Shown: one piece after another, positions 24,969-41,339 of the stretch
Layout: every line of letters begins with the position of its first letter
How positions within the stretch are numbered: position 1 is the first letter of the stretch
Assembly: GCA_001643675.2 (NCBI GenBank)
Contig: LSRY02000003.1
Location: 62,001 to 126,000, forward strand
Direction: 5' to 3'
Origin: Monocercomonoides exilis PA203
Lineage: Eukaryota > Protista > Preaxostyla
Length of the DNA: 64,000 nucleotides
Translations under genes and position numbers: made by a program
Notes under the pieces: model-generated
The model's database searches: none
What the model was told of the DNA's origin: nothing
The model's input: the letters and a program-made list of their open reading frames with translations, nothing else

Positions 24969-26700
24969 ACCTCATTCCCTTCTCTTTTCTCCCCAGTCAT
25001 CTTTCTCTCCTCTGTCTCTTCTCCCTTTTCCTCCTTCTCCTTCTTCAGAAGCTCCTCCAGCTGCATCCGGAGCTCTTCCACCGTCGCCCTCCCCTTCCCT
25101 TTTCTCCTCCTCTCCCTCCTCCTCTTCTCCCTCCTCCTCTTTTCCTTTGCCTCTTCCTCCTCCCACAGCCTCTCCTCCTCTCCGTCATACCACTCCTTGT
25201 GCAGCGGCTCCTGGAAGATCTTTTCAAACTCCTTTGCCTCCCGCATCTCCTCCCGAATCAGTCGCCTCCTCTTTTTGCTCCATTTCTTCTCCAGCGCTGC
25301 AAATGCCTTGTCTTCTTCTTCTTCTTCTTCTTCTTCTTCCTTCGCCTCCACCTCCTCTTTTCCTCCATCCCCGTCTTTGGTGCTCGCCTTCGCCCCTCCT
25401 CTGTCTTGCCCCATCCGCCTCATCGGCCGCTGGGCCATCAGCTCCATCTCTTTCTGCTTCCACTCGCTCAGGATCATCTCCTTCTTCTGCTTTCGCGCCT
25501 CTGTCGTCTTTTCTCGGTCATCCACCCCGCTGCTGCTGCTGCTGCTGCTTCTGTTGCCACTCCCATTGCCATTCTCACCGTTCGTGGTGGCAGTGGTGGT
25601 GGTGGTAGTGGTGGTGTCAGCAACATCGTAGATCACCTGCCCCCATCGCTGCTGCCTGATGGAGTCCCACCGCAGCCGGCGAAGAAGCAGAGAAGCAGAC
25701 GACTCAGCTGAAGAAGACGAGGCGTCTGAAAGGGAATCACTGCTGGCATCCCTTTCCAGTCCCGTAGCATCGTCCCCGGAACAGCCATTCACCTGCTCTT
25801 CGCCTTCTGTGCCAGCATCAGTCATCATTCCTTTTCTGACATTTTTATTTGCTCCCTTCGCTCTGCTTTCAAAAAGCTTCCTATTCGTTTTTTCGCTTTT
25901 GTTTTTTTCAGTGCCAGCGCAATGGCTTCGTAAAGCACTTCCATTCTTGATTCAATCACAGGTGGGCGTGTGCGTTCAACTATTTCAGCGTCAAAACAGT
26001 CAAACTTTCTTAAAGAATCAAAAGAATAGAAATCTTTTTTGAGTGCAGAAGGATCATCTTTAACAAAAGCATTTTCTGCTCCACTGTTGTGATCATTGTC
26101 CATTTCGCTACTTATCAAATCTGATTTGCCAAAGGATATTTGCTTTTTGCTTTCTTCGGAAACAAGAGGTAATGTGTGCAAGCTATAATCAACTTGTGGA
26201 GGCACATATTTTGTTGATTTGTTTTCATTTTGAGGTAAAATGGTTGTCTGGAAAGATGAATGTTCTTTTGATGGGCTTGTATCAGATTGAAGCGAATGCA
26301 CCAATTGTGCAAACTCAATATTTTTTGATGGAAATGGACGTGATGAAATACTCTGCGAATATTTTGTGATGTCTGTTGCGTGAGTTGTAATTGCTTGAAA
26401 TGAAGACATGTGAAGTGACGATGCAAAAGTTTTATAAAACAGTTGCTGCCCGCTACCCCAAACCTCTGTAATAGAAGAAACATAAATTAGATGTAAATAA
26501 CAATACAAACCATCTTCACAGCCCAAGCAAGCAGATGCATTTTGAAATTTTTTTCGAGAGTCTATTGACGAAGCATCAAAAGGTGATAAAAATATGCATA
26601 TATTAAAAAAAAAAACAAAAAACAAAAAATTCAATAAAATATTATTAATTATACTTTGAATATTAATTATCAAACGACTATTTTTCATACAATAAGACAT
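23774..26700 (-). pseudogene. Frameshifted copy of the hypothetical charged protein at 39607-42537
   Basis: Split into ORFs 25825..26700 and 23774..25828 by A7 versus A8 in the partner copy (~25902-25908). Could be a homopolymer sequencing error. Confidence 0.6.
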
Positions 26701-26930
26701 TTACATCGATTGTGAATAAGCAAATGAATTAATACAAACTCTTAAATAATTTTTCAAGAAAATTTTAGTATTTTGATAGCAAAAAATATTGTATTTTGGT
26801 TCAAATTTCCAAAAAAAAATATTTAATTAACATTTCATTTAAACGAAAGCTAAATATATGTATAACTTATTGAAAGTTTTCAAAGAACAATATTCAAAAA
26901 GACAAAAATAACAAAAATATCATCATCTTC

Positions 26931-27145
26931 TTCATTATATCAGAAAAAACAAAAGTTAAAAATATGGAGAATCCGGGTTTCGATCCCGGTGCCTCACGCA
27001 TGCAAAGCGCGCGATCTACCAATTGATCTAATTCCCCTTGCATGAAAAACAATTTTTTCTTTCAACTTTGTTAATTTGTATTTATGAAAATTATGAAAGA
27101 TTTGCTCTAAATCAACATTTTTCTTTCTTTCTTTCTAACTTTCTT
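26931..27145. repeat. 215-bp tRNA-Ala-containing direct repeat, copy 1 (partner 36804-37018)
   Basis: Same sequence at a constant offset of 9873 bp. Confidence 0.9.
26965..27037 (-). tRNA. tRNA-Ala(TGC)
   Basis: GGGGAAT/ATTCTCC acceptor stem with G3:U70, anticodon arm CGCGC-TT-TGC-AT-GCGTG, T arm CCGGG-ATCGAAA-CCCGG; 73 nt. Confidence 0.95.
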
Positions 27146-28178
27146 TCTTTTTATTTAATTTTTTTTTTTTTCTTGTTTTATTATATTTTCTTTTTTCTTC
27201 GTTTTCGTATCTTATCTTATTTAATGAATTATTTTTTATTAATTCAAATTTTTTCTTTTCAATTTTTCGGAATCAATTGAAGAGAAAACATTTGTTAATA
27301 TCCCCACAAAATATTTAGAAAATTCTTGAAGGTTAAAATCTTTCTATATATAGATTTATATGTTATAACATTATTTGCAGAACAAGTTTTTAATTTTTAT
27401 GATTCAAAATCTGAATGAATTTTTAATTTGAAAGTTTGAAAGAAAGTTTTAAAGTCTGTGTTTCCAAAGCAAAAAAATTAAAAAACTGTGGACAGATGCA
27501 TAATCTCAACAAACTTTGAAATTCCATTGCGATGCAAAACCCAATCATTCACTTTATATGTGTAAACTGCTGTGACATTCAGATATGAAACTTCTTTCTC
27601 CGACGAACAAAGATAAAACTTTTTCGATTTTCGTCGAAACCCGTTGAATCTCATTTTTCAGAGTTTCTCCCAAAAGAATGAAGAATTTTGGAATATGTTC
27701 GTTTTGATGGATGGATAATAACAATAATTCGTGTGACTTTGAGTTCACTGATTGTATTTCTAAAAAAATACGTTGAAAGGCAACTATTAATGGAAGTTGA
27801 GATGATCAAACTGTCCACAGTTATAGAAAGTGTCTTCCATAATACGCATTGACCTCATTTCATTTTTCAGTATATTTGGCTTCAAATTTTGTATTCTGGA
27901 ATATATTAAAAAATAAATAATAAATATTATAATATTCCGTATGTTCAATTATCGAGTCAAAATGCAAATTTGATGAAAATATTCAATTGTCATTTTCACC
28001 TGAAAAGTATTCAAAATAAATTTCAAAAAGAAAAATTAACAAACTATCTACTGTTCGGCAATATTAATAAACTCATATTTTGAATAATTTGGAAAAATCA
28101 ATGGATACTGATATGTTCAATGTAAACCTGTCTGACGCGCAAAAAAATTTTTCTCACGTCCGTCAGTAATTTTCCAGT

Positions 28179-28180
<2 letters not shown>

Positions 28181-28232
<52 letters not shown>
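28181..28232 (+). repeat. poly(T) tract, ~52 nt
   Basis: Directly visible, just inside the left hAT end. Confidence 0.9.
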
Positions 28233-28504
28233 CGAAAAGACTAATCTTTATATGAACTTATTTTAAAATAATACTGATTTTGTGATAATTATTTTTTAAG
28301 TTTTCAGTCTTTTATTTTTTTAACATGTCCCATTAATTGATTTCAGATTCATTATAAAATTGAAATGCTTTTATATCAGAGTTCCCTCACCTCTTAATCG
28401 ATTCTACCTCCTTTTCGGTACAAAAAACTTCATGTTCCAAACAGACTCTTCACCAAATGCTCATGTCTTGTTTGGAGGAACTGAAACTCACAGAGAGATA
28501 TTAA

Positions 28505-30094
28505 GTCGATTGTCCTTTTCTGGTTTGGTGTGAATGGAACGATTTAAATGATGGAAATGAATATGGAGGTGCGTTTTATGTTGAATGCACAAATGCAAAT
28601 CTCACAATCACTTCTTGTTCATTCAGCAATTGTTCTAGTGGTGATGTTTGCGGGGCGTTATATTGTATATATTTGTTAAATGTGAATATCGCAAAATCCA
28701 ATTTCACAAGTTGTTCAGCTGCTCATGGAGGAGCTGCTTACGTTGGCTGGCCACAATCAAATTCTGTTTATTCATTCTCAGAAAACAGAGTGGAAAGTTG
28801 TTCAATCACAAACTGGTGCGGAACTGGTTGGTATTTTGGACTCGATTATAATCCAACAACTGTTCAATTTCAGTTTTTAAAATGCAAGTGCATCTCAAAT
28901 TCGGGTGGTGATTCCACAGGTTCTTTAACATTTACATATCCTCCAAGCAACAAACCGAGTCAATTTTTGGTTAATGATTGTCAGTTTATAAACAACAAAT
29001 TGACAGCTTCTGCAAATTATGGAGGAGCTGGGTTGTGTTGCACAGCGACTTATTCCTGGATGAATGGAATAAAATTCATCACATTCTGTTTCTTCGAAGG
29101 AAATACAGCAACTAATGGCAGAGGAAACGATGTGTTTTTCAATGGTAATTCCATAGCTCAATCTCCGTTTGAGAATTGCGGTTCAACAACCCCAACAAAA
29201 AGAGTGTATAATAATGGAACAGCTGAAAACGCTGAATATAATGGCTGGCTTCCAATCATCAACCAGAACAAAATAGTCTCAAATGGTGGAAGTGATGTCG
29301 ATGCCTGTGGCAAAACACAGCAAAGCCCATGTGCCACAGTGGAGTATGCCCTCGGGTGCGTTGCTCCCTTCAGCGATGCCTCCCTCTCTCTTCTCGTCTC
29401 CACTTTCACTCCCACAAAGACTCTCACATTTCGTGCCCCAAATACAAGAATCACTGGAAATGGCACAACTGCCACCATCATCGCCTCCAGTGGCATTCCT
29501 CAACCACAAAACTCACATTCGCAGTCATCACAATCAACATCATCAAATTCATCATTTTCATCATTTTCATCTGCATCTTCTTCACCAGATCCATCTGCCA
29601 CTTCTGCCCTCTTCCAACAGACCCAGGGCTCCCTCACAGTCTCTGCCCTCGCCATCGCCCACAACTCCACAAACCAAATCACCCCCATCCTCTTCCACCT
29701 CTCCGATAACTCCCCTTCCCTCAACCTCAACACAACCACCATCACCGGAACAACCTCCATAACAATCACAACTCCCCTCTTCTTCCTCACTGCTGGCTCC
29801 CTCGCCCTCAACCACACAGCAATCACCAGTCTCCCCCTCAGCAGCCAAAGCATCTTCCACCTCACCTCCCTCACCGCTCCCCTCACTCTCAACTCCTCCA
29901 ACATCACCGACATCACCTCCACTGCCACCCCCACCAGCTGTGTCCTCTCCTCTGCCACCTCCCCTGCCCTCTCCCTCTCCCTCGCCAACTGCACCATCAC
30001 CAGTATCAACTCAGAACAGTTCAGCCAACAGACTGCAACAGATGGCGGGTGTATCTCATTCGCCTCATCAGCCTTGGCCAACATATTTTTCTAG
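28505..30094 (+). pseudogene. Fragment of a Cys-rich beta-helix/Pmp-like surface protein (transposon cargo)
   Basis: Open frame from 28505 with GGA(F/A)...F.NC repeats, NGRGNDVFF and DVDACG...PCATVEYAL. No proper start or signal peptide; frame broken at both ends. Confidence 0.7.
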
Positions 30095-30699
30095 TGAAAA
30101 ACACAAAGTTCAACGGGTGCGAGATAAATGAAGCATAGTCGGTGAATTTTGAAGAAAGAAAGAAAAAACTCTGAGTGTTTTTCATGATAATGTGATTGAA
30201 GTGAATTAAATGAAAAAGATTGATATACCACCGTTTTTGAGATATTTTCTATTTTCATTTCAATGCATTCTAATGATTTTCAAATAAACTCGTTCGAGTT
30301 ATTTCTGATTATTTATTATTTTGATTTGAAGTTAATAGACTTTTAAAAGATCTTTGGAAATGACGTGTGAAAAAGAAAAATAAATATAGAATTTTCATTG
30401 GACACTGTCAACTCAACTTCAATTTATTGTCTTTAATCTCCACATATAGTTTTCATCAGAGAAACAATTCGTTTCCTGCTTTCGTTTGTGAAATGATAAT
30501 TCATAACAGTCAAATGCAATTCGTTTGAAAGTTATGTGAGTTTATCAACATGAAATAAACACTATGACGAATATTTCAGAATTGTTTTTGAAAACGGATT
30601 CGTGTTGTGATCCATTTATTTCTGATGTTGCAAATAAAATTTAAAAAAAAGTTAAATCAAAGAAGTGCACAGACTTTTAAATAGAATTTTGAAAATTAT

Positions 30700-31000
30700 T
30701 CATCCTAATATTTGATCCCAGTCCATCGTCAATGTGACTTTCTTCCCACAAATATCTCCTTTTCTTTTCTTTGAAGGGTTTCAAGACAATTTTCGCTTTT
30801 TCCAGTTGAAAGAGGAAGATCAAAATCTGAGTCTTCAAAAAATTAATAAATGAATTTGTGTATACATCATTAAAATGGATATCTTCTGTTTTGATTAACT
30901 ATTTGTTTTGTCCAGAAGGAATTATTCAATTTGTGATTCAGTTAATATTGCTTCTTTAACAAATGATGAAGATAAATTGGATCGAAGTTCTCTTCGGAAG
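30700..31000 (-). pseudogene. Possible decayed hAT transposase fragment
   Basis: Broken frames give DIHFNDVYTNSFINF...SDFDLP followed by KKVTLTMDW, resembling the hAT N-terminal region and first catalytic Asp. Weak. Confidence 0.35.
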
Positions 31001-33399
31001 ATGATGAAAAATATTCATTTCTGAATAAGATGTCGAATAAGATTGACGAAAAACACTCTTTTGTTGCAAATAATTAGAATAGAATTTTATTATATTATTT
31101 AAGAACTTTTTTGTTGTGTTAATGAAGAAAAAACAAACAGCATTAAAAGTCAATTTCAACAATAAAAATAAACAAACGATTTCCTGGTGATATGAAGCAC
31201 TGAAAGACAAATAAAATAAATAGATAATAAAGATTTTCAAACTGCCTTCTTTTTTCGTATCTGTCCGTTTTCTTTTTCATATTGTATGAAAAACAAAAGT
31301 TCGAATAAAAAGTTAAAATATCAAACTATTTTGTCATTTATCAAGACAAATGCATCTCATTCGCTTATTCGCATAAAATTTTATTTTTTGATCAAAGTCA
31401 TAGTGACTCTGACTTGACCTGGCAGGAACTGACTGTCAATGACGATCTAAAATTCCTTTTTTGCCTTCACGTCAGTTTCCCATTTTAATTTAAAAATTCA
31501 TTCATTTTTTCTTAAAAAAAAAATAAGTCAGTGACAAAGAGAATTTTTTGAATGCAATAAACAATATGAAAATGAAATGAATAAAGTAAATAATTTATTT
31601 TTGTTTTATTGCTTCTGAAATTACGATAATTAATTACTGACGTGTAAATTTTCGTTAAGTCCGTCAGAAATGAAAATTTTCACGTCAGTTGTCATTACGT
31701 CATACAGGTTTAGTTCAATGAGTTGTTATAGCGGCAAAAATCAGCATAATTGGAGGGGGATATGTTCTCCTTTAATGGAGTTATGATCTATGAGAATAAT
31801 TTCATGATGTTTTATTTATTTCCAATTTTCATTTGCAATAATTAAACTTCGCATTTTTTGCGATTTCATTTTCGAAAATTCATTTCAATAATATTTCTCC
31901 CATATTGATTATTCAAATGTTGAGTTGTGAAAATGTTCAAAGGAAATAGCTGTGTTTATTTCATATTCAACAAATTTGATTCTTTTCAATATTAATGAGA
32001 AATAAAATTTGAAATCAACTTTTTTCTATTGGAAACTTCAGATTGAACATTTGTTTTGCAAATAAATATATGGCACTGAAAAATCTCTGTTCATTAAACG
32101 AATGATTTTTTTTTCCTCCACATCAAATAATGACTCATGAAACAATTACTAAAATTTTGGATTTCAATGGAAAAAAAATAACAAAGCTTATGAAAATTAT
32201 TTTAATTTGAAAGCATACAGGAAAAATAAAAAAACTCCAAAAACAATCACACATGTGATAATTTTTCGTTTTATTTTATCTGTTTGTTTTAAATCGTGAT
32301 ATTTTCAGAAAAGGAATCAAAAAATAAATCCAATTTTTTTTTTGATAAAGATATGTTTGATAATTTTTGATATCATATTTTAATCTGAGATGTGATATAA
32401 ATACCAGTTTGTTTGTCTTTTGCAATTAAACTTTTCAGGTGAACAATCATTGAATCGAAAATTTTTCTGAAAAAATTTTAAATGAACAATAAATGATCAA
32501 AAACATTGTTTAAAATTGATTTTTCTCTATTGGTTTTCTTCTTGTTTTTCTTGTAATTTCACAATCGAATATTTCAAAAAAAGAATATCTGATCACAAAA
32601 TATATCACGCATACTGACATTTTTTTGTTTGTTTCATGTGTGGATTGAGATGGCTTTTGAACAGATTATTAATTATTTCATAAATTAAAAATAGGCATGC
32701 ATATTTTCTCTTGTTTATTCCTTGATAATAATAAAAGTTTTCGTTTTGCTTTATGTGATCATTAGAACGGACTATAACTGAAAAATGAAACAATAGATTG
32801 ATATCCATTCTCTGTCGATCTGTCTTCAAACATAATCTTTTTCTGTTGATTGGAAGAAAGAGTGAGTCACCGTGATGGAAAGAGATGCTCAGCAGATTGG
32901 CTGTTCTCCGCAAATAAAAAAACAGAACTTTTTAATCATCAAGAGCCACAATGATTAATCACATTTTTTTTAATTTTTGAAAGCGATTTCAATTTGTGCG
33001 TTTTGTTCCAAACACATAATTCGTTCCGGTTTTCTTGTGAATGTCACAACACTTATTATATCTTCGTCCTTGTTCCTTCCTTTGAGGAACAGGATGAGCA
33101 GGAGATACCAGACAAACTTCGATAAGTGAGCGATTGCTTTTATCAGAGTGGTTGAAGGTGACAATGAGTGAACCCAAATCTGATTGTCGCTGTTAGTTGA
33201 ATTGATGGGATCTGAGTGATAAAAGAAGATGCTTGTTTTTGTTGTTCTGGGACGCGTGAAAGTGAAAGGAAGGGATGTTGTGTGTTGTCAACTGAAAACA
33301 GTTGATTGGCTATCTGGTGAGAAATAAACCCTAAAATGGGGAATCTTGAAGGTGTGTGTTGCTTATTGGTGAAAGAATAAACCACTTTGCAACGAGAGT

Positions 33400-36480: not shown

Positions 36481-36803
36481 CACCTAAAAAAATAAATTAA
36501 CAAAATGTTTTTCACTTCTTTTTCAAATGCATCTGAATGCCATTTCATCGATCTTAATTTTTTTTTTTAAAGGAAAAAAAGAAAGGAATTGATTAGCATC
36601 TGGAAATTTTGATTTTGAATAAGATCGTTATACTTCATGAGAGAATAACAACAAAATTCTGCTTTCTATTTCTCAATAAAAAAGTATAACACCTTCAACC
36701 ATCAATACTTACCAAATAAACCACAAAATAATCTTTTTTAATGGAATTTTCTCCCTTATCTATTTCATTAAATTTTTCCTACAGATCTTGTATACATAAT
36801 TTT

Positions 36804-37266
36804 TTCATTATATCAGAAAAAACAAAAGTTAAAAATATGGAGAATCCGGGTTTCGATCCCGGTGCCTCACGCATGCAAAGCGCGCGATCTACCAATTGAT
36901 CTAATTCCCCTTGCATGAAAAACAATTTTTTCTTTCAACTTTGTTAATTTGTATTTATGAAAATTATGAAAGATTTGCTCTAAATCAACATTTTTCTTTC
37001 TTTCTTTCTAACTTTCTTGGCAAGTTCCAAGTATATGGACCATCGATAAAAAATTTTTTGTATATTTATAATGAAACAAAATGGAATATTAATTTATTTA
37101 AAATTAGTTATTTTTGTCGAAAAAGTGTTTTTAACAATTTTTCATTTTTCTTTTGATCTATCCCATAACATTTTTTATTTTCTTCTGGTTAGAAATATTT
37201 GTTTATTTAACGAAAAAAGCTGTCTTCGAACATAAATGCTGTTATAATAAAAACAGAATTAATAAT
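36804..37266. repeat. 463-bp inner inverted repeat (partner 38914-39376); its first 215 bp are also a direct repeat of 26931-27145
   Basis: Reverse-complement match with a constant coordinate sum of 76180; duplicated 81-aa spurious ORF. Confidence 0.9.
36838..36910 (-). tRNA. tRNA-Ala(TGC)
   Basis: Identical to the other two copies. Confidence 0.95.
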
Positions 37267-39269
37267 GCTCATGTTATTTTAATTGTGTAACGAAGCATCT
37301 TATCAACAAATATCAGAATTGTTCATATACATCGAGCATCGAGTGATAATTACTAAGAAAAAAGCAAGAAATGCAACTTTTCATTAGAAGCTGCGGCAGA
37401 TAGCATTGCTGTGAAAAATGGAAGATTTGTTGAAAAATTTAGAAGTTGATGTGCCTTTGAGGTGATTCACCGATCAACAATAAATGACGAATAAACAAGG
37501 ATAAACTTACATAGCTTTTTGATCATTTTTGAAAGAAGTGATAAAAAGGCAGAAGAAGAAACGGAAGAAGTGAAAAGAAAATGATCAAAAAGAAATGTTC
37601 TTGAAATGATTAAAGAAGAAAGGAACGAGATATCATTTAGAGATTTCATGAATTATTTGATTTTCTCTATGAATAATCTCATGATTATCAATTATTGGAT
37701 ATTTCAATTAATTCAATTATATTTTGAGAAATGAAATACTTTTTCTTTGTATTTCCAAAACAATTTTTTTCTTTTCAATTCATTTCTCAAAATGATTTAA
37801 AAGAATAATTGGAAAAATTATTAAATTGTTTTTATTTTTAATTTTTTTTCAAAAAAAATTTCAAAAATTCCATTGAAATCTTAAACTTTCATCAAGAATA
37901 TTCAGTGAATTGTCACTTTCCATCATCTTCAAGAAGATTCATTTGTTTATCAGTCGTTCAATTGTGCATTCATCGCTTTTCGTTCTCCCGTTTGTTCCGT
38001 GTGCTCACTTCTTGTTGTATTTTTTCGGACAATTTAAGAAAAAGAAAAAAAGCGACAATTTTTTGATAGTATTCAAAAGGATCAAAGATAAATGTTCGTT
38101 GAATACAGATATCAACATCTTTTGTGAAAAATAAGACAGAAATTAAAGCGACAAAATAAAAAGAGAATTTCATTCAAAAACCGATAAACTCAAAAAGTTG
38201 ATCATGAACGAACGCTTTGTATTTCTCTAACTTTTTTCTTTTTTGGTCAGAAATCTTCATACCAAATTCAACCAATTTTTGTTTCTTCACCAATAAATTT
38301 CATTCCATTTATATTCTGAAAGTGACTGAATTCTAATTAATTAGAGTTGCATACTGTCTTTCTTGTGGAAACTGAAGGAAGAAGGAGAAGGAGAAGAAAA
38401 TCAGTATATTGAAGTTGATATGTTTATGATTGTTGCACTTTGTCTGGAATGCGTGAGTGTGACGAATGATATGAAGGTTGCAATCAGCAAATTTTAGTTC
38501 TGAAAAAAAAGATGAAAAATGTTTTGTTTTAACAATGAACGTTTGTTGAACCAAGGCGAGGATGACGTTTGAATAAAAAATTGTGTTCAATCAGCATTGC
38601 AATTTAATAATTTTATTTTTGAGGCTTATTTCCAAGATTTGCAATAGCTTCTGCAGTGTTCCTTTTAGATTCTCATTCTGCCGCATCGTTTTCGCAGTAA
38701 TGGTTTACACTGATTCTACCGCAGCTTCCTTTATTTCTTTCCTTTTCTGCAAATATGCAGTTCATCATTTTATTTATACATTAAAAATCTTCTTTTCAAA
38801 AATCAATTCTGAAAAATGAAGTCTAAATATTGAAAAATTCTTTTAATGTTCAATATCAAACATTTGCATCGTTTTATGTTCAAATACTATAATCAAAGTG
38901 ACCAACAAAACATATTATTTATTCTGTTTTTATTATAACAGCATTTATGTTCGAAGACAGCTTTTTTCGTTAAATAAACAAATATTTCTAACCAGAAGAA
39001 AATAAAAAATGTTATGGGATAGATCAAAAGAAAAATGAAAAATTGTTAAAAACACTTTTTCGACAAAAATAACTAATTTTAAATAAATTAATATTCCATT
39101 TTGTTTCATTATAAATATACAAAAAATTTTTTATCGATGGTCCATATACTTGGAACTTGCCAAGAAAGTTAGAAAGAAAGAAAGAAAAATGTTGATTTAG
39201 AGCAAATCTTTCATAATTTTCATAAATACAAATTAACAAAGTTGAAAGAAAAAATTGTTTTTCATGCAA

Positions 39270-39342
39270 GGGGAATTAGATCAATTGGTAGATCGCGCGC
39301 TTTGCATGCGTGAGGCACCGGGATCGAAACCCGGATTCTCCA
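39270..39342 (+). tRNA. tRNA-Ala(TGC)
   Basis: Full cloverleaf, G3:U70, followed by a T5 pol III terminator-like run. Confidence 0.95.
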
Positions 39343-39606
39343 TATTTTTAACTTTTGTTTTTTCTGATATAATGAAGAAGATGATGATATTTTTGTTATT
39401 TTTGTCTTTTTGAATATTGTTCTTTGAAAACTTTCAATAAGTTATACATATATTTAGCTTTCGTTTAAATGAAATGTTAATTAAATATTTTTTTTTGGAA
39501 ATTTGAACCAAAATACAATATTTTTTGCTATCAAAATACTAAAATTTTCTTGAAAAATTATTTAAGAGTTTGTATTAATTCATTTGCTTATTCACAATCG
39601 ATGTAA

Positions 39607-41339
39607 ATGTCTTATTGTATGAAAAATAGTCGTTTGATAATTAATATTCAAAGTATAATTAATAATATTTTATTGAATTTTTTGTTTTTTGTTTTTTTTT
39701 TTAATATATGCATATTTTTATCACCTTTTGATGCTTCGTCAATAGACTCTCGAAAAAAATTTCAAAATGCATCTGCTTGCTTGGGCTGTGAAGATGGTTT
39801 GTATTGTTATTTACATCTAATTTATGTTTCTTCTATTACAGAGGTTTGGGGTAGCGGGCAGCAACTGTTTTATAAAACTTTTGCATCGTCACTTCACATG
39901 TCTTCATTTCAAGCAATTACAACTCACGCAACAGACATCACAAAATATTCGCAGAGTATTTCATCACGTCCATTTCCATCAAAAAATATTGAGTTTGCAC
40001 AATTGGTGCATTCGCTTCAATCTGATACAAGCCCATCAAAAGAACATTCATCTTTCCAGACAACCATTTTACCTCAAAATGAAAACAAATCAACAAAATA
40101 TGTGCCTCCACAAGTTGATTATAGCTTGCACACATTACCTCTTGTTTCCGAAGAAAGCAAAAAGCAAATATCCTTTGGCAAATCAGATTTGATAAGTAGC
40201 GAAATGGACAATGATCACAACAGTGGAGCAGAAAATGCTTTTGTTAAAGATGATCCTTCTGCACTCAAAAAAGATTTCTATTCTTTTGATTCTTTAAGAA
40301 AGTTTGACTGTTTTGACGCTGAAATAGTTGAACGCACACGCCCACCTGTGATTGAATCAAGAATGGAAGTGCTTTACGAAGCCATTGCGCTGGCACTGAA
40401 AAAAAACAAAAGCGAAAAAACGAATAGGAAGCTTTTTGAAAGCAGAGCGAAGGGAGCAAATAAAAATGTCAGAAAAGGAATGATGACTGATGCTGGCACA
40501 GAAGGCGAAGAGCAGGTGAATGGCTGTTCCGGGGACGATGCTACGGGACTGGAAAGGGATGCCAGCAGTGATTCCCTTTCAGACGCCTCGTCTTCTTCAG
40601 CTGAGTCGTCTGCTTCTCTGCTTCTTCGCCGGCTGCGGTGGGACTCCATCAGGCAGCAGCGATGGGGGCAGGTGATCTACGATGTTGCTGACACCACCAC
40701 TACCACCACCACCACTGCCACCACGAACGGTGAGAATGGCAATGGGAGTGGCAACAGAAGCAGCAGCAGCAGCAGCAGCGGGGTGGATGACCGAGAAAAG
40801 ACGACAGAGGCGCGAAAGCAGAAGAAGGAGATGATCCTGAGCGAGTGGAAGCAGAAAGAGATGGAGCTGATGGCCCAGCGGCCGATGAGGCGGATGGGGC
40901 AAGACAGAGGAGGGGCGAAGGCGAGCACCAAAGACGGGGATGGAGGAAAAGAGGAGGTGGAGGCGAAGGAAGAAGAAGAAGAAGAAGAAGAAGAAGACAA
41001 GGCATTTGCAGCGCTGGAGAAGAAATGGAGCAAAAAGAGGAGGCGACTGATTCGGGAGGAGATGCGGGAGGCAAAGGAGTTTGAAAAGATCTTCCAGGAG
41101 CCGCTGCACAAGGAGTGGTATGACGGAGAGGAGGAGAGGCTGTGGGAGGAGGAAGAGGCAAAGGAAAAGAGGAGGAGGGAGAAGAGGAGGAGGGAGAGGA
41201 GGAGAAAAGGGAAGGGGAGGGCGACGGTGGAAGAGCTCCGGATGCAGCTGGAGGAGCTTCTGAAGAAGGAGAAGGAGGAAAAGGGAGAAGAGACAGAGGA
41301 GAGAAAGATGACTGGGGAGAAAAGAGAAGGGAATGAGGT

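Follow-up and report, generated by a model that had tools for sequence, protein, structure and literature searches.

Here we report a 3,590-bp DNA transposon of the oxymonad Monocercomonoides exilis PA203 (Eukaryota; Preaxostyla), which occupies positions 28123-31712 of a stretch of 64,000 nucleotides from contig LSRY02000003.1 (assembly GCA_001643675.2, positions 62,001 to 126,000 of the forward strand; hereafter the window) and holds a fragment of a giant receptor-kinase-like host gene as its cargo. In all probability, the element is an internal-deletion derivative of a hAT family whose ancestor captured the fragment in a single old event, and the cargo has since been overwritten by gene conversion from host genes. 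An earlier reading of the window letters (the original prediction) had described the element as Pack-type and hAT-like, with a surface-protein gene fragment whose frame was intact enough to suggest recent capture or selection. The outline of that element holds, and the two explanations for its open frame do not.

Results

The window element is bounded by the perfect 8-bp target-site duplication (TSD) that had been predicted for it, which lies outside both ends, and by 15-bp terminal inverted repeats (TIRs) that match each other at 14 of 15 positions (Table 1). When the 64-kb window was searched for the TIR with at most two mismatches, the two element ends were the sole matches, against 0.06 expected from shuffled sequences. 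The predicted subterminal repeats were recovered as an enrichment of TGACG/CGTCA at both ends, with two copies in the left 150 bp and six in the right 300 bp (the sixth, at 31698, falls within the right TIR), compared with about 1.3 per kb in the element interior. The first ~100 bp of the element are 80-97% identical to those of all family members; the right subterminal region, which is the side of the transposase gene in autonomous copies, is 66-82% identical across all of them.

Further TIR pairs with 8-bp TSDs, by which the original prediction could be checked, were found in the genome of M. exilis (82.3 Mb in 101 contigs), where the TIR pattern gave 67 matches at no more than one mismatch and a reversed control gave 12. 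Twenty plus/minus pairs with a spacing of 2.8-8.2 kb were compared, and 19 true pairs besides the window copy remained after the exclusion of one (L034). A perfect 8-bp TSD was present in 17 of the 19, a 7/8 match in one and no match in one; with the window copy counted, 18 of 20 true pairs have a perfect TSD. The 17 distinct TSDs have T at position 2 in 13 cases, A at position 6 in 12 and A at position 7 in eight. The hAT target consensus is nTnnnnAn.

Copies L043 and L045 are ~99.8% identical over 3.4 kb, and L038 and L039 are 100% identical. In both pairs the TSDs differ and the flanks are unrelated, which indicates very recent transposition and includes cargo-bearing copies (L043/L045), as expected if the family spreads its cargo by transposition. 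The common flanks of L046 and L047 (C62) represent a segmental duplication. L038, L039, L046 and L047 form a cargo-less subfamily of 3.3-3.5 kb, which has only ~95 bp on the left and 55-80 bp on the right in common with the other copies and which is the most recently active one.

The family was placed through its transposase-encoding member, L041 (C26:667217-674052; 6,836 bp, perfect TSD), which has a stop-free frame of 917 codons on the strand opposite to its cargo; the frames of its relatives on C33 and C68 are broken. Hermes was the sole family matched by the L041 protein among PDB sequences, with E-values of 6e-4 for the single sequence and 3e-4 for a profile built with eight paralog pieces, and the CxxH, TRW and C-terminal S-E-R...R...L segments all align. 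The hAT dimerisation family (PF05699) was matched in Pfam by four of the eight paralog pieces (best E 0.0021) and DUF659 by one, and the L041 protein itself matched no Pfam family at E 0.1. With the AlphaFold model of L041 (mean predicted local distance difference test score, pLDDT, of 49) as Foldseek query, the 11 best-ranked matches (ranks 1-12) were Hermes chains with E-values of 2e-8 to 1e-5, and Hermes ranked ahead of the P-element transposase. From the Hermes matches, the aligned motifs and the 8-bp TSD, we place the L041 family in the hAT superfamily, which was also the element type of the original prediction. The L041 frame has no in-frame ATG before codon 207, but conservation among its paralogs begins at about codon 25, which makes a short upstream transposase exon likely.

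The window copy is non-autonomous. A tblastn search with the family transposase (E 1e-4) gave no match in it, so it contains no transposase remnant, and there is no open reading frame (ORF) longer than 94 aa outside the cargo, spacer included. The part of the element in which such a remnant had been presumed is a non-coding spacer of 1.27 kb. At both ends, the TIR 15-mer of the window copy is the same as in L041, which makes it plausible that the copy could be moved in trans by an L041-like transposase.

The cargo corresponds to residues ~300-846 of the host protein P0161 (2,645 residues) and is 79-88% identical in nucleotides (nt) and 70-89% identical in amino acids (aa) to host receptor genes; these comparisons with the host, and those that follow, are based on annotated proteins and on the coordinates and identities that the searches reported. 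The best host match (C25:2293138-2294677, 88% nt) lies on the window's own contig, and the best protein, P0002 (87-89% aa), is also the nearest one to the window copy in a comparison of cargo cores. The parent family was thereby found, and an exact donor was not among the candidates scored, the nearest genes being 85-88% identical in nucleotides. P0161 has a signal-peptide-like segment at its start and a C-terminal kinase domain (PF07714, residues 2506-2603, E 8e-11). The cargo is internal to such a gene, without the signal-peptide end and without ~1,800 C-terminal residues. The kinase end of P0161 fits the published finding that tyrosine-kinase-like proteins are the largest family of M. exilis (PMC6759080), and also that they overlap with the 'unclassified repeats' (PMC8767320). 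Host nucleotide matches stop at element positions 1984-1989 (30111), well within the element, and no cargo homology crosses the TIR/TSD boundaries. Upstream of ~28385, nucleotide and tblastn comparisons with the host found no host-gene similarity.

A first look with the 709-codon cargo of copy L033 gave more than 4,000 host-family candidates, many of them on the window's own contig; this cargo is 72-82% identical in amino acids to host frames of 2,700-3,100 codons and also to some of 720-880. A search of 1.8 billion representative proteins returned 148 clusters with proteins of up to 7,937 residues. All ten cluster members that were looked up are hypothetical proteins of M. exilis, and M. exilis was the only source of annotated proteins that are identical to the cargo or close to it.

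The AlphaFold model of the cargo has pLDDT values of 65-85 over the Cys-rich residues 20-180. In a structural comparison with VIA-align, all 50 best matches were right-handed parallel beta-helices (Z 8-11.4; root-mean-square deviation ~3 A over 141-159 residues in the best rows), which supports this fold, and with it the predicted beta-helix-like character, for the modelled Cys-rich part. Foldseek gave nothing significant with the cargo model (none below E 0.3), neither the cargo frame nor its 709-residue version matched a Pfam family at E 0.1 (Pmp repeats, PF02415, included), and the cargo had no match among PDB sequences. The 'surface protein' of the original prediction can be refined to the beta-helix head region of a giant receptor-kinase-like family, for which a location at the cell surface is presumed.

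The same cargo is present in 15 of the 19 other copies at 70-90% nucleotide identity, including L041 and its broken relative L049. Host similarity starts in every cargo copy at P0161 residue 298-316, mostly at 310 or 311 (at ~300 in the window copy, mapped via P0011), and the 3' ends vary among copies (783/784, 796, 846, 863, 877 and 1000). The window copy and copy L031 both end at residue 846, and both have the 1.27-kb spacer. The common 5' residue and the differing 3' ends argue for one capture event, after which the copies underwent different internal deletions, and the comparison as a whole points to one old capture by the family ancestor, not to the private, recent capture that had been proposed. 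The label Pack-type is appropriate insofar as the window copy is non-autonomous and holds a host gene fragment between its TIRs, but the fragment is found with the same 5' junction in L041 and L049.

The window copy and its sister L031 are 92-98% identical in the backbone and in both cargo flanks, and 62-73% identical in the cargo core, with sharp switch points. The same pattern was found for L040/L048, L040/L050, L032/L040 and L041/L049; over the five sister pairs, the identity of the backbone is 83-98% and that of the core 61-79%. Ratios of nonsynonymous to synonymous substitution rates (dN/dS) in the divergent tracts are 0.17-0.33 (Table 2), which indicates that the differences built up under purifying selection, in working genes rather than in a transposon undergoing decay. 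Among elements, the C-rich 3' part of the cargo is 92-98% identical, more alike than the backbones. L043 and L045 differ by 23 substitutions, 18 of which fall within 63 bp of the cargo (P ~7e-24), and host genes match the L045 version of this patch at 93-96%. When the cores were placed in a tree with 12 host and 13 element rows, the bootstraps never grouped all of the element rows together. The approximately unbiased (AU) test rejected one clade of element-borne cores (p 0.0002) and also the cores of the window copy and L031 as sisters (p 0.011). We read the cargo as having been repeatedly gene-converted from host paralogs, or perhaps template-switched from them during the repair of excision breaks. 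The mosaic cores lend support to the sequence exchange between cargo and host protein family that the original prediction had envisaged.

The ~530 open codons noted in the window copy were found as 529 codons and a stop. Compared with L031, however, the copy lacks 20 bp between 28525 and 28526, a deletion by which the family ATG at 28432 meets a TGA at 28531-28533 and is cut off from the long frame. Several frames are open on both strands in the C-rich 3' half of the frame (~29280-30130), and only the AT-rich first ~260 codons are informative. Stops or frameshifts are present in 14 of 16 cargo copies, the window copy among them. The only cargo frame recorded as unbroken is that of L033 (709 codons, annotated MONOS_3086), which reaches host residue ~1000; the annotated 685-aa model in this copy is P0001. 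The broken cargo copies and the recent activity of the cargo-less subfamily indicate that movement does not require the cargo and that selection does not maintain it in the elements, contrary to what had been suggested from its intact frame. Conversion from functional genes accounts better for the long open frame, together with the C-rich composition of its 3' half.

Several further observations concern the family and its surroundings. The length of the poly-T tract in the left subterminal region differs among copies (by 34 T between L043 and L045), which could reflect true instability or an error of the nanopore assembly in homopolymers. Outside the window copy and L031 (C2), the spacer was found only as weak pieces of 72-77% identity at C31:122.5-123.5 kb and C91:1743.3 kb, and none of the other copies has a relative of it. 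L038 and L039 (G000:C17:74570-78050 and 79859-83340) lie 1.8 kb apart in opposite orientation. The excluded pair L034 (G000:C14:103093-108889) was rejected as an element: it consists of two inverted actin genes 5.2 kb apart, whose start (ATGTCTGACG...) mimics the TIR with one mismatch. Positions 161-337 of the cargo-less subfamily match the stretch between these two actin genes at 84%. In L033 (G000:C10:1553736-1561913), the TIRs are 8.2 kb apart, the flanking 8-mers do not match, the unbroken cargo frame is at the left end, and Ser-rich frames lie on the other strand in the remainder; the locus may be two elements or one rearranged element.

More than 70 further transposase matches with 30-50% identity were recorded, many of them in stop-free frames of 900-950 codons (for example C9:555666-558449, C32:126126-128912 and C21:62336-65083), and several additional hAT families, possibly active ones, seem to be present in M. 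exilis. The M. exilis protein P0010 ('putative nuclease HARBI1', 764 aa) combines a Harbinger/PIF-type DDE nuclease (PF01609, PF13359) with ~390 receptor-head residues that are 78% identical over query residues 221-617. It may represent a receptor gene with a Harbinger element in it, or else the same fragment carried by transposons of a second superfamily.

The window also contains a perfect direct repeat of 218 bp (26928-27145 and 36801-37018), each copy with a gene for tRNA-Ala(TGC) (26965-27037 and 36838-36910), and a perfect inverted repeat of 839 bp (26307-27145 and 39162-40000), the far arm of which holds a third tRNA-Ala gene (39270-39342). The first tRNA gene is 1.1 kb from the transposon. 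These repeats could reflect a recent duplication and inversion or an effect of the assembly.

Table 1. Features of the transposon in the window (positions are those of the window).
Feature	Position	Strand	Remarks
Left TSD, GTTCAATG	28115-28122		same 8-mer, perfect, at 31713-31720
Left TIR, TAAACCTGTCTGACG	28123-28137	+	15-mer also terminates many other genome copies
Left subterminal region, element-own	28138-28384	+	CGTCAG 28161-28166; poly-T 28181-28233 (53 nt); AT-rich leader to capture junction
Cargo, internal fragment of giant receptor-kinase-like host gene	28385-30111	+	P0161 residues ~300-846
Short frame, family ATG to premature TGA	28432-28533	+	33 codons; matches start of P0001 model
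Long open frame	28505-30094	+	529 codons + TAG; no in-frame ATG before codon 185
Deletion site, 20 bp, frameshifting	28525/28526		pairwise alignment with sister copy L031
Replaced (gene-converted) tract	28808-29462	+	62-73% identity to L031, against 94-95% in the backbone; element positions ~686-1340
AT-rich non-coding spacer	30112-31378		1.27 kb; 95% identity in L031 (C2)
Right subterminal region	31379-31697	-	TGACG/CGTCA at 31440, 31470, 31638, 31662, 31683
Right TIR, TAAACCTGTATGACG	31698-31712	-	14/15 match to left TIR
Right TSD, GTTCAATG	31713-31720		perfect match to left 8-mer

Table 2. Substitution rates in divergent cargo tracts of sister copies (WIN, window copy).
Pair	Tract	dS	dN	dN/dS
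WIN/L031	686-1340	1.49	0.26	0.18
L040/L048	899-1250	0.77	0.26	0.33
L040/L048	1272-1650	1.22	0.26	0.21
L040/L050	899-1250	1.48	0.25	0.17
L040/L050	1272-1650	0.67	0.13	0.19
L041/L049	826-1707	1.11	0.31	0.28

Discussion

According to the history that we favour, an ancestor of the family would have captured, once, ~2 kb from within a giant receptor-kinase-like gene (~codons 300-1000), comprising the Cys-rich beta-helix head and the next C-rich repeat region without the signal-peptide end and without the kinase end, and the captured piece would have come to lie tail-to-tail with the gene for the transposase. Cut-and-paste movement would then have spread both the autonomous element and the derivatives that arose from it by deletion, each time with an 8-bp target duplication. 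The window copy would have kept both ends and most of the cargo, lost the transposase gene and gained the 1.27-kb spacer, and its 20-bp frameshifting deletion would have come later; any movement of it would depend on transposase supplied in trans by a copy such as C26:667217-674052. Within the element, the cargo would act as a further member of the receptor family, its variable head being overwritten repeatedly with sequence from various functional host genes, through gene conversion or through template switching in the course of repair, and its conserved 3' part being kept uniform. Such overwriting from working genes would make the frame look fresh although the copies are not under selection.

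Some of the results weigh against this history. The hAT placement leans on sequence scores that are weak and on a model of poor quality (mean pLDDT 49), and the transposase comparisons used a single open frame that lacks the probable upstream exon. The core tree is poorly resolved, and the AU test does not reject the cores of L041 and L049 as sisters (p 0.14). No exact donor of a tract was present among the candidates scored, which were 40 of 200-600 in each search, so that one may have gone undetected; the highest identities were 85% for the window copy (950 bp), 81% for L031 and 96% for L045 (67 bp). The polarity of the tracts may also be read in two ways, since either copy of a sister pair could be the converted one.

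Repeated and independent captures of the same region from different host paralogs, one for each subfamily, would account for the scatter of the element-borne cores among host genes in the tree and for the fact that these cores resemble each other (60-80%) no more closely than they resemble host genes. We consider them quite unlikely, however, because every copy starts at host residue ~298-316, the identity switches lie inside the cargo with both flanks diverging no more than the backbone, or less, and a new capture cannot account for a 63-bp patch between elements that are identical elsewhere. It is very unlikely that the cargo serves the transposon as a second functional gene, selected for helping the element or the cell. 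Its retention in most copies, the autonomous one included, the unbroken 709-codon frame of L033 (MONOS_3086) and dN/dS values below 1 would agree with such a role, but 14 of 16 copies are broken, the cargo-less L038 and L039 transposed very recently, and the fragment lacks the signal-peptide end and everything beyond residue ~1000. Moreover, the low dN/dS is limited to replaced tracts, with dS near saturation, and would thus be inherited from the donor genes.

The explanation closest to the original prediction, in which a Pack-type element made its own recent capture and the intact frame reflects this capture or selection, draws on the non-autonomous structure of the window copy with its host gene fragment, on its 529 codons without a stop and on the location of the nearest host gene (88% nt) on the same chromosome-size contig. 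It is highly improbable, since 15 other copies, including the autonomous one, hold the fragment with the same 5' junction, the sister L031 has both cargo flanks at 91-98%, and descent of the other copies from the window element is excluded by identities of 70-87%. The 20-bp deletion that separates the frame from its ATG, the 14 broken copies among 16 and a nearest host gene that is merely 85-88% identical also speak against it. Chance inverted and direct repeats around an ordinary pseudogene, without any transposon, would suit an AT-rich context in which short repeats are common, but the possibility is practically negligible in view of two TIR matches in the window against 0.06 expected, 67 genome matches against 12 in the control, 17 further pairs with perfect 8-bp TSDs and near-identical copies in unrelated flanks.

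With the favoured history of one old capture and later conversion, M. exilis has a worked-out, recently active hAT family, and gene capture by DNA transposons, which is best known from plants and fungi, occurs also in a metamonad. The captured receptor piece would not simply be decaying but would stay within the gene-conversion network of its parent family, and an open frame in the cargo of a transposon is poor evidence of recent capture or selection. The role of transposons in moving variable receptor modules becomes directly testable. An unlikely but consequential extension is that the hAT family serves as a mobile store of receptor-head cassettes, donating patches to receptor genes as well as receiving them. 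If so, transposition would move variable-head sequence from one chromosome to another and supply material for diversifying the receptor family, and the store would be a transposon-borne equivalent of the archives of silent cassettes in antigenic variation.

The family has the 8-bp TSD, the short TIRs and the RNase-H-like core with CxxH and (T)RW that are typical of Hermes, Ac and hobo, and the C-terminal S-E-R...R...L segment aligns to the C-terminal region of Hermes. In contrast to Hermes, with which it has less than 20% identity, the L041 protein has no Pfam hAT match and contains a long acidic low-complexity insert. The TIR of the M. exilis family starts with TAAAC; hAT TIRs usually start with CAG or TAG. 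No description of hAT elements of M. exilis was found in the papers retrieved on this genome, in which DNA transposons are given only as a class of 4.5% and 'unclassified repeats' as 35% (PMC8767320).

Pack-TYPE elements, including Pack-hAT of maize, have been described as a plant phenomenon (Gisby & Catoni 2022; PMC8903248). The window copy resembles them as a non-autonomous TIR element with a TSD that copies a fragment of a host coding gene to new sites (transduplication). It differs in that its host is a metamonad and not a plant, and in that the fragment is also present in a transposase-encoding copy and was therefore not acquired by the defective element itself. Moreover, the donor family has hundreds to thousands of members, with which the cargo appears to continue its exchange. 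A complete hAT element with a captured histone H3 sequence is known from Dothideomycete fungi (Dhillon et al. 2019; PMC6710886), and there, as in M. exilis, a transposase-bearing hAT amplifies a transduplicated host coding sequence along with itself. The fungal copies, however, derive from a housekeeping donor and are destroyed through RIP (repeat-induced point mutation), whereas those of M. exilis derive from a hypervariable receptor and appear to be patched by conversion.

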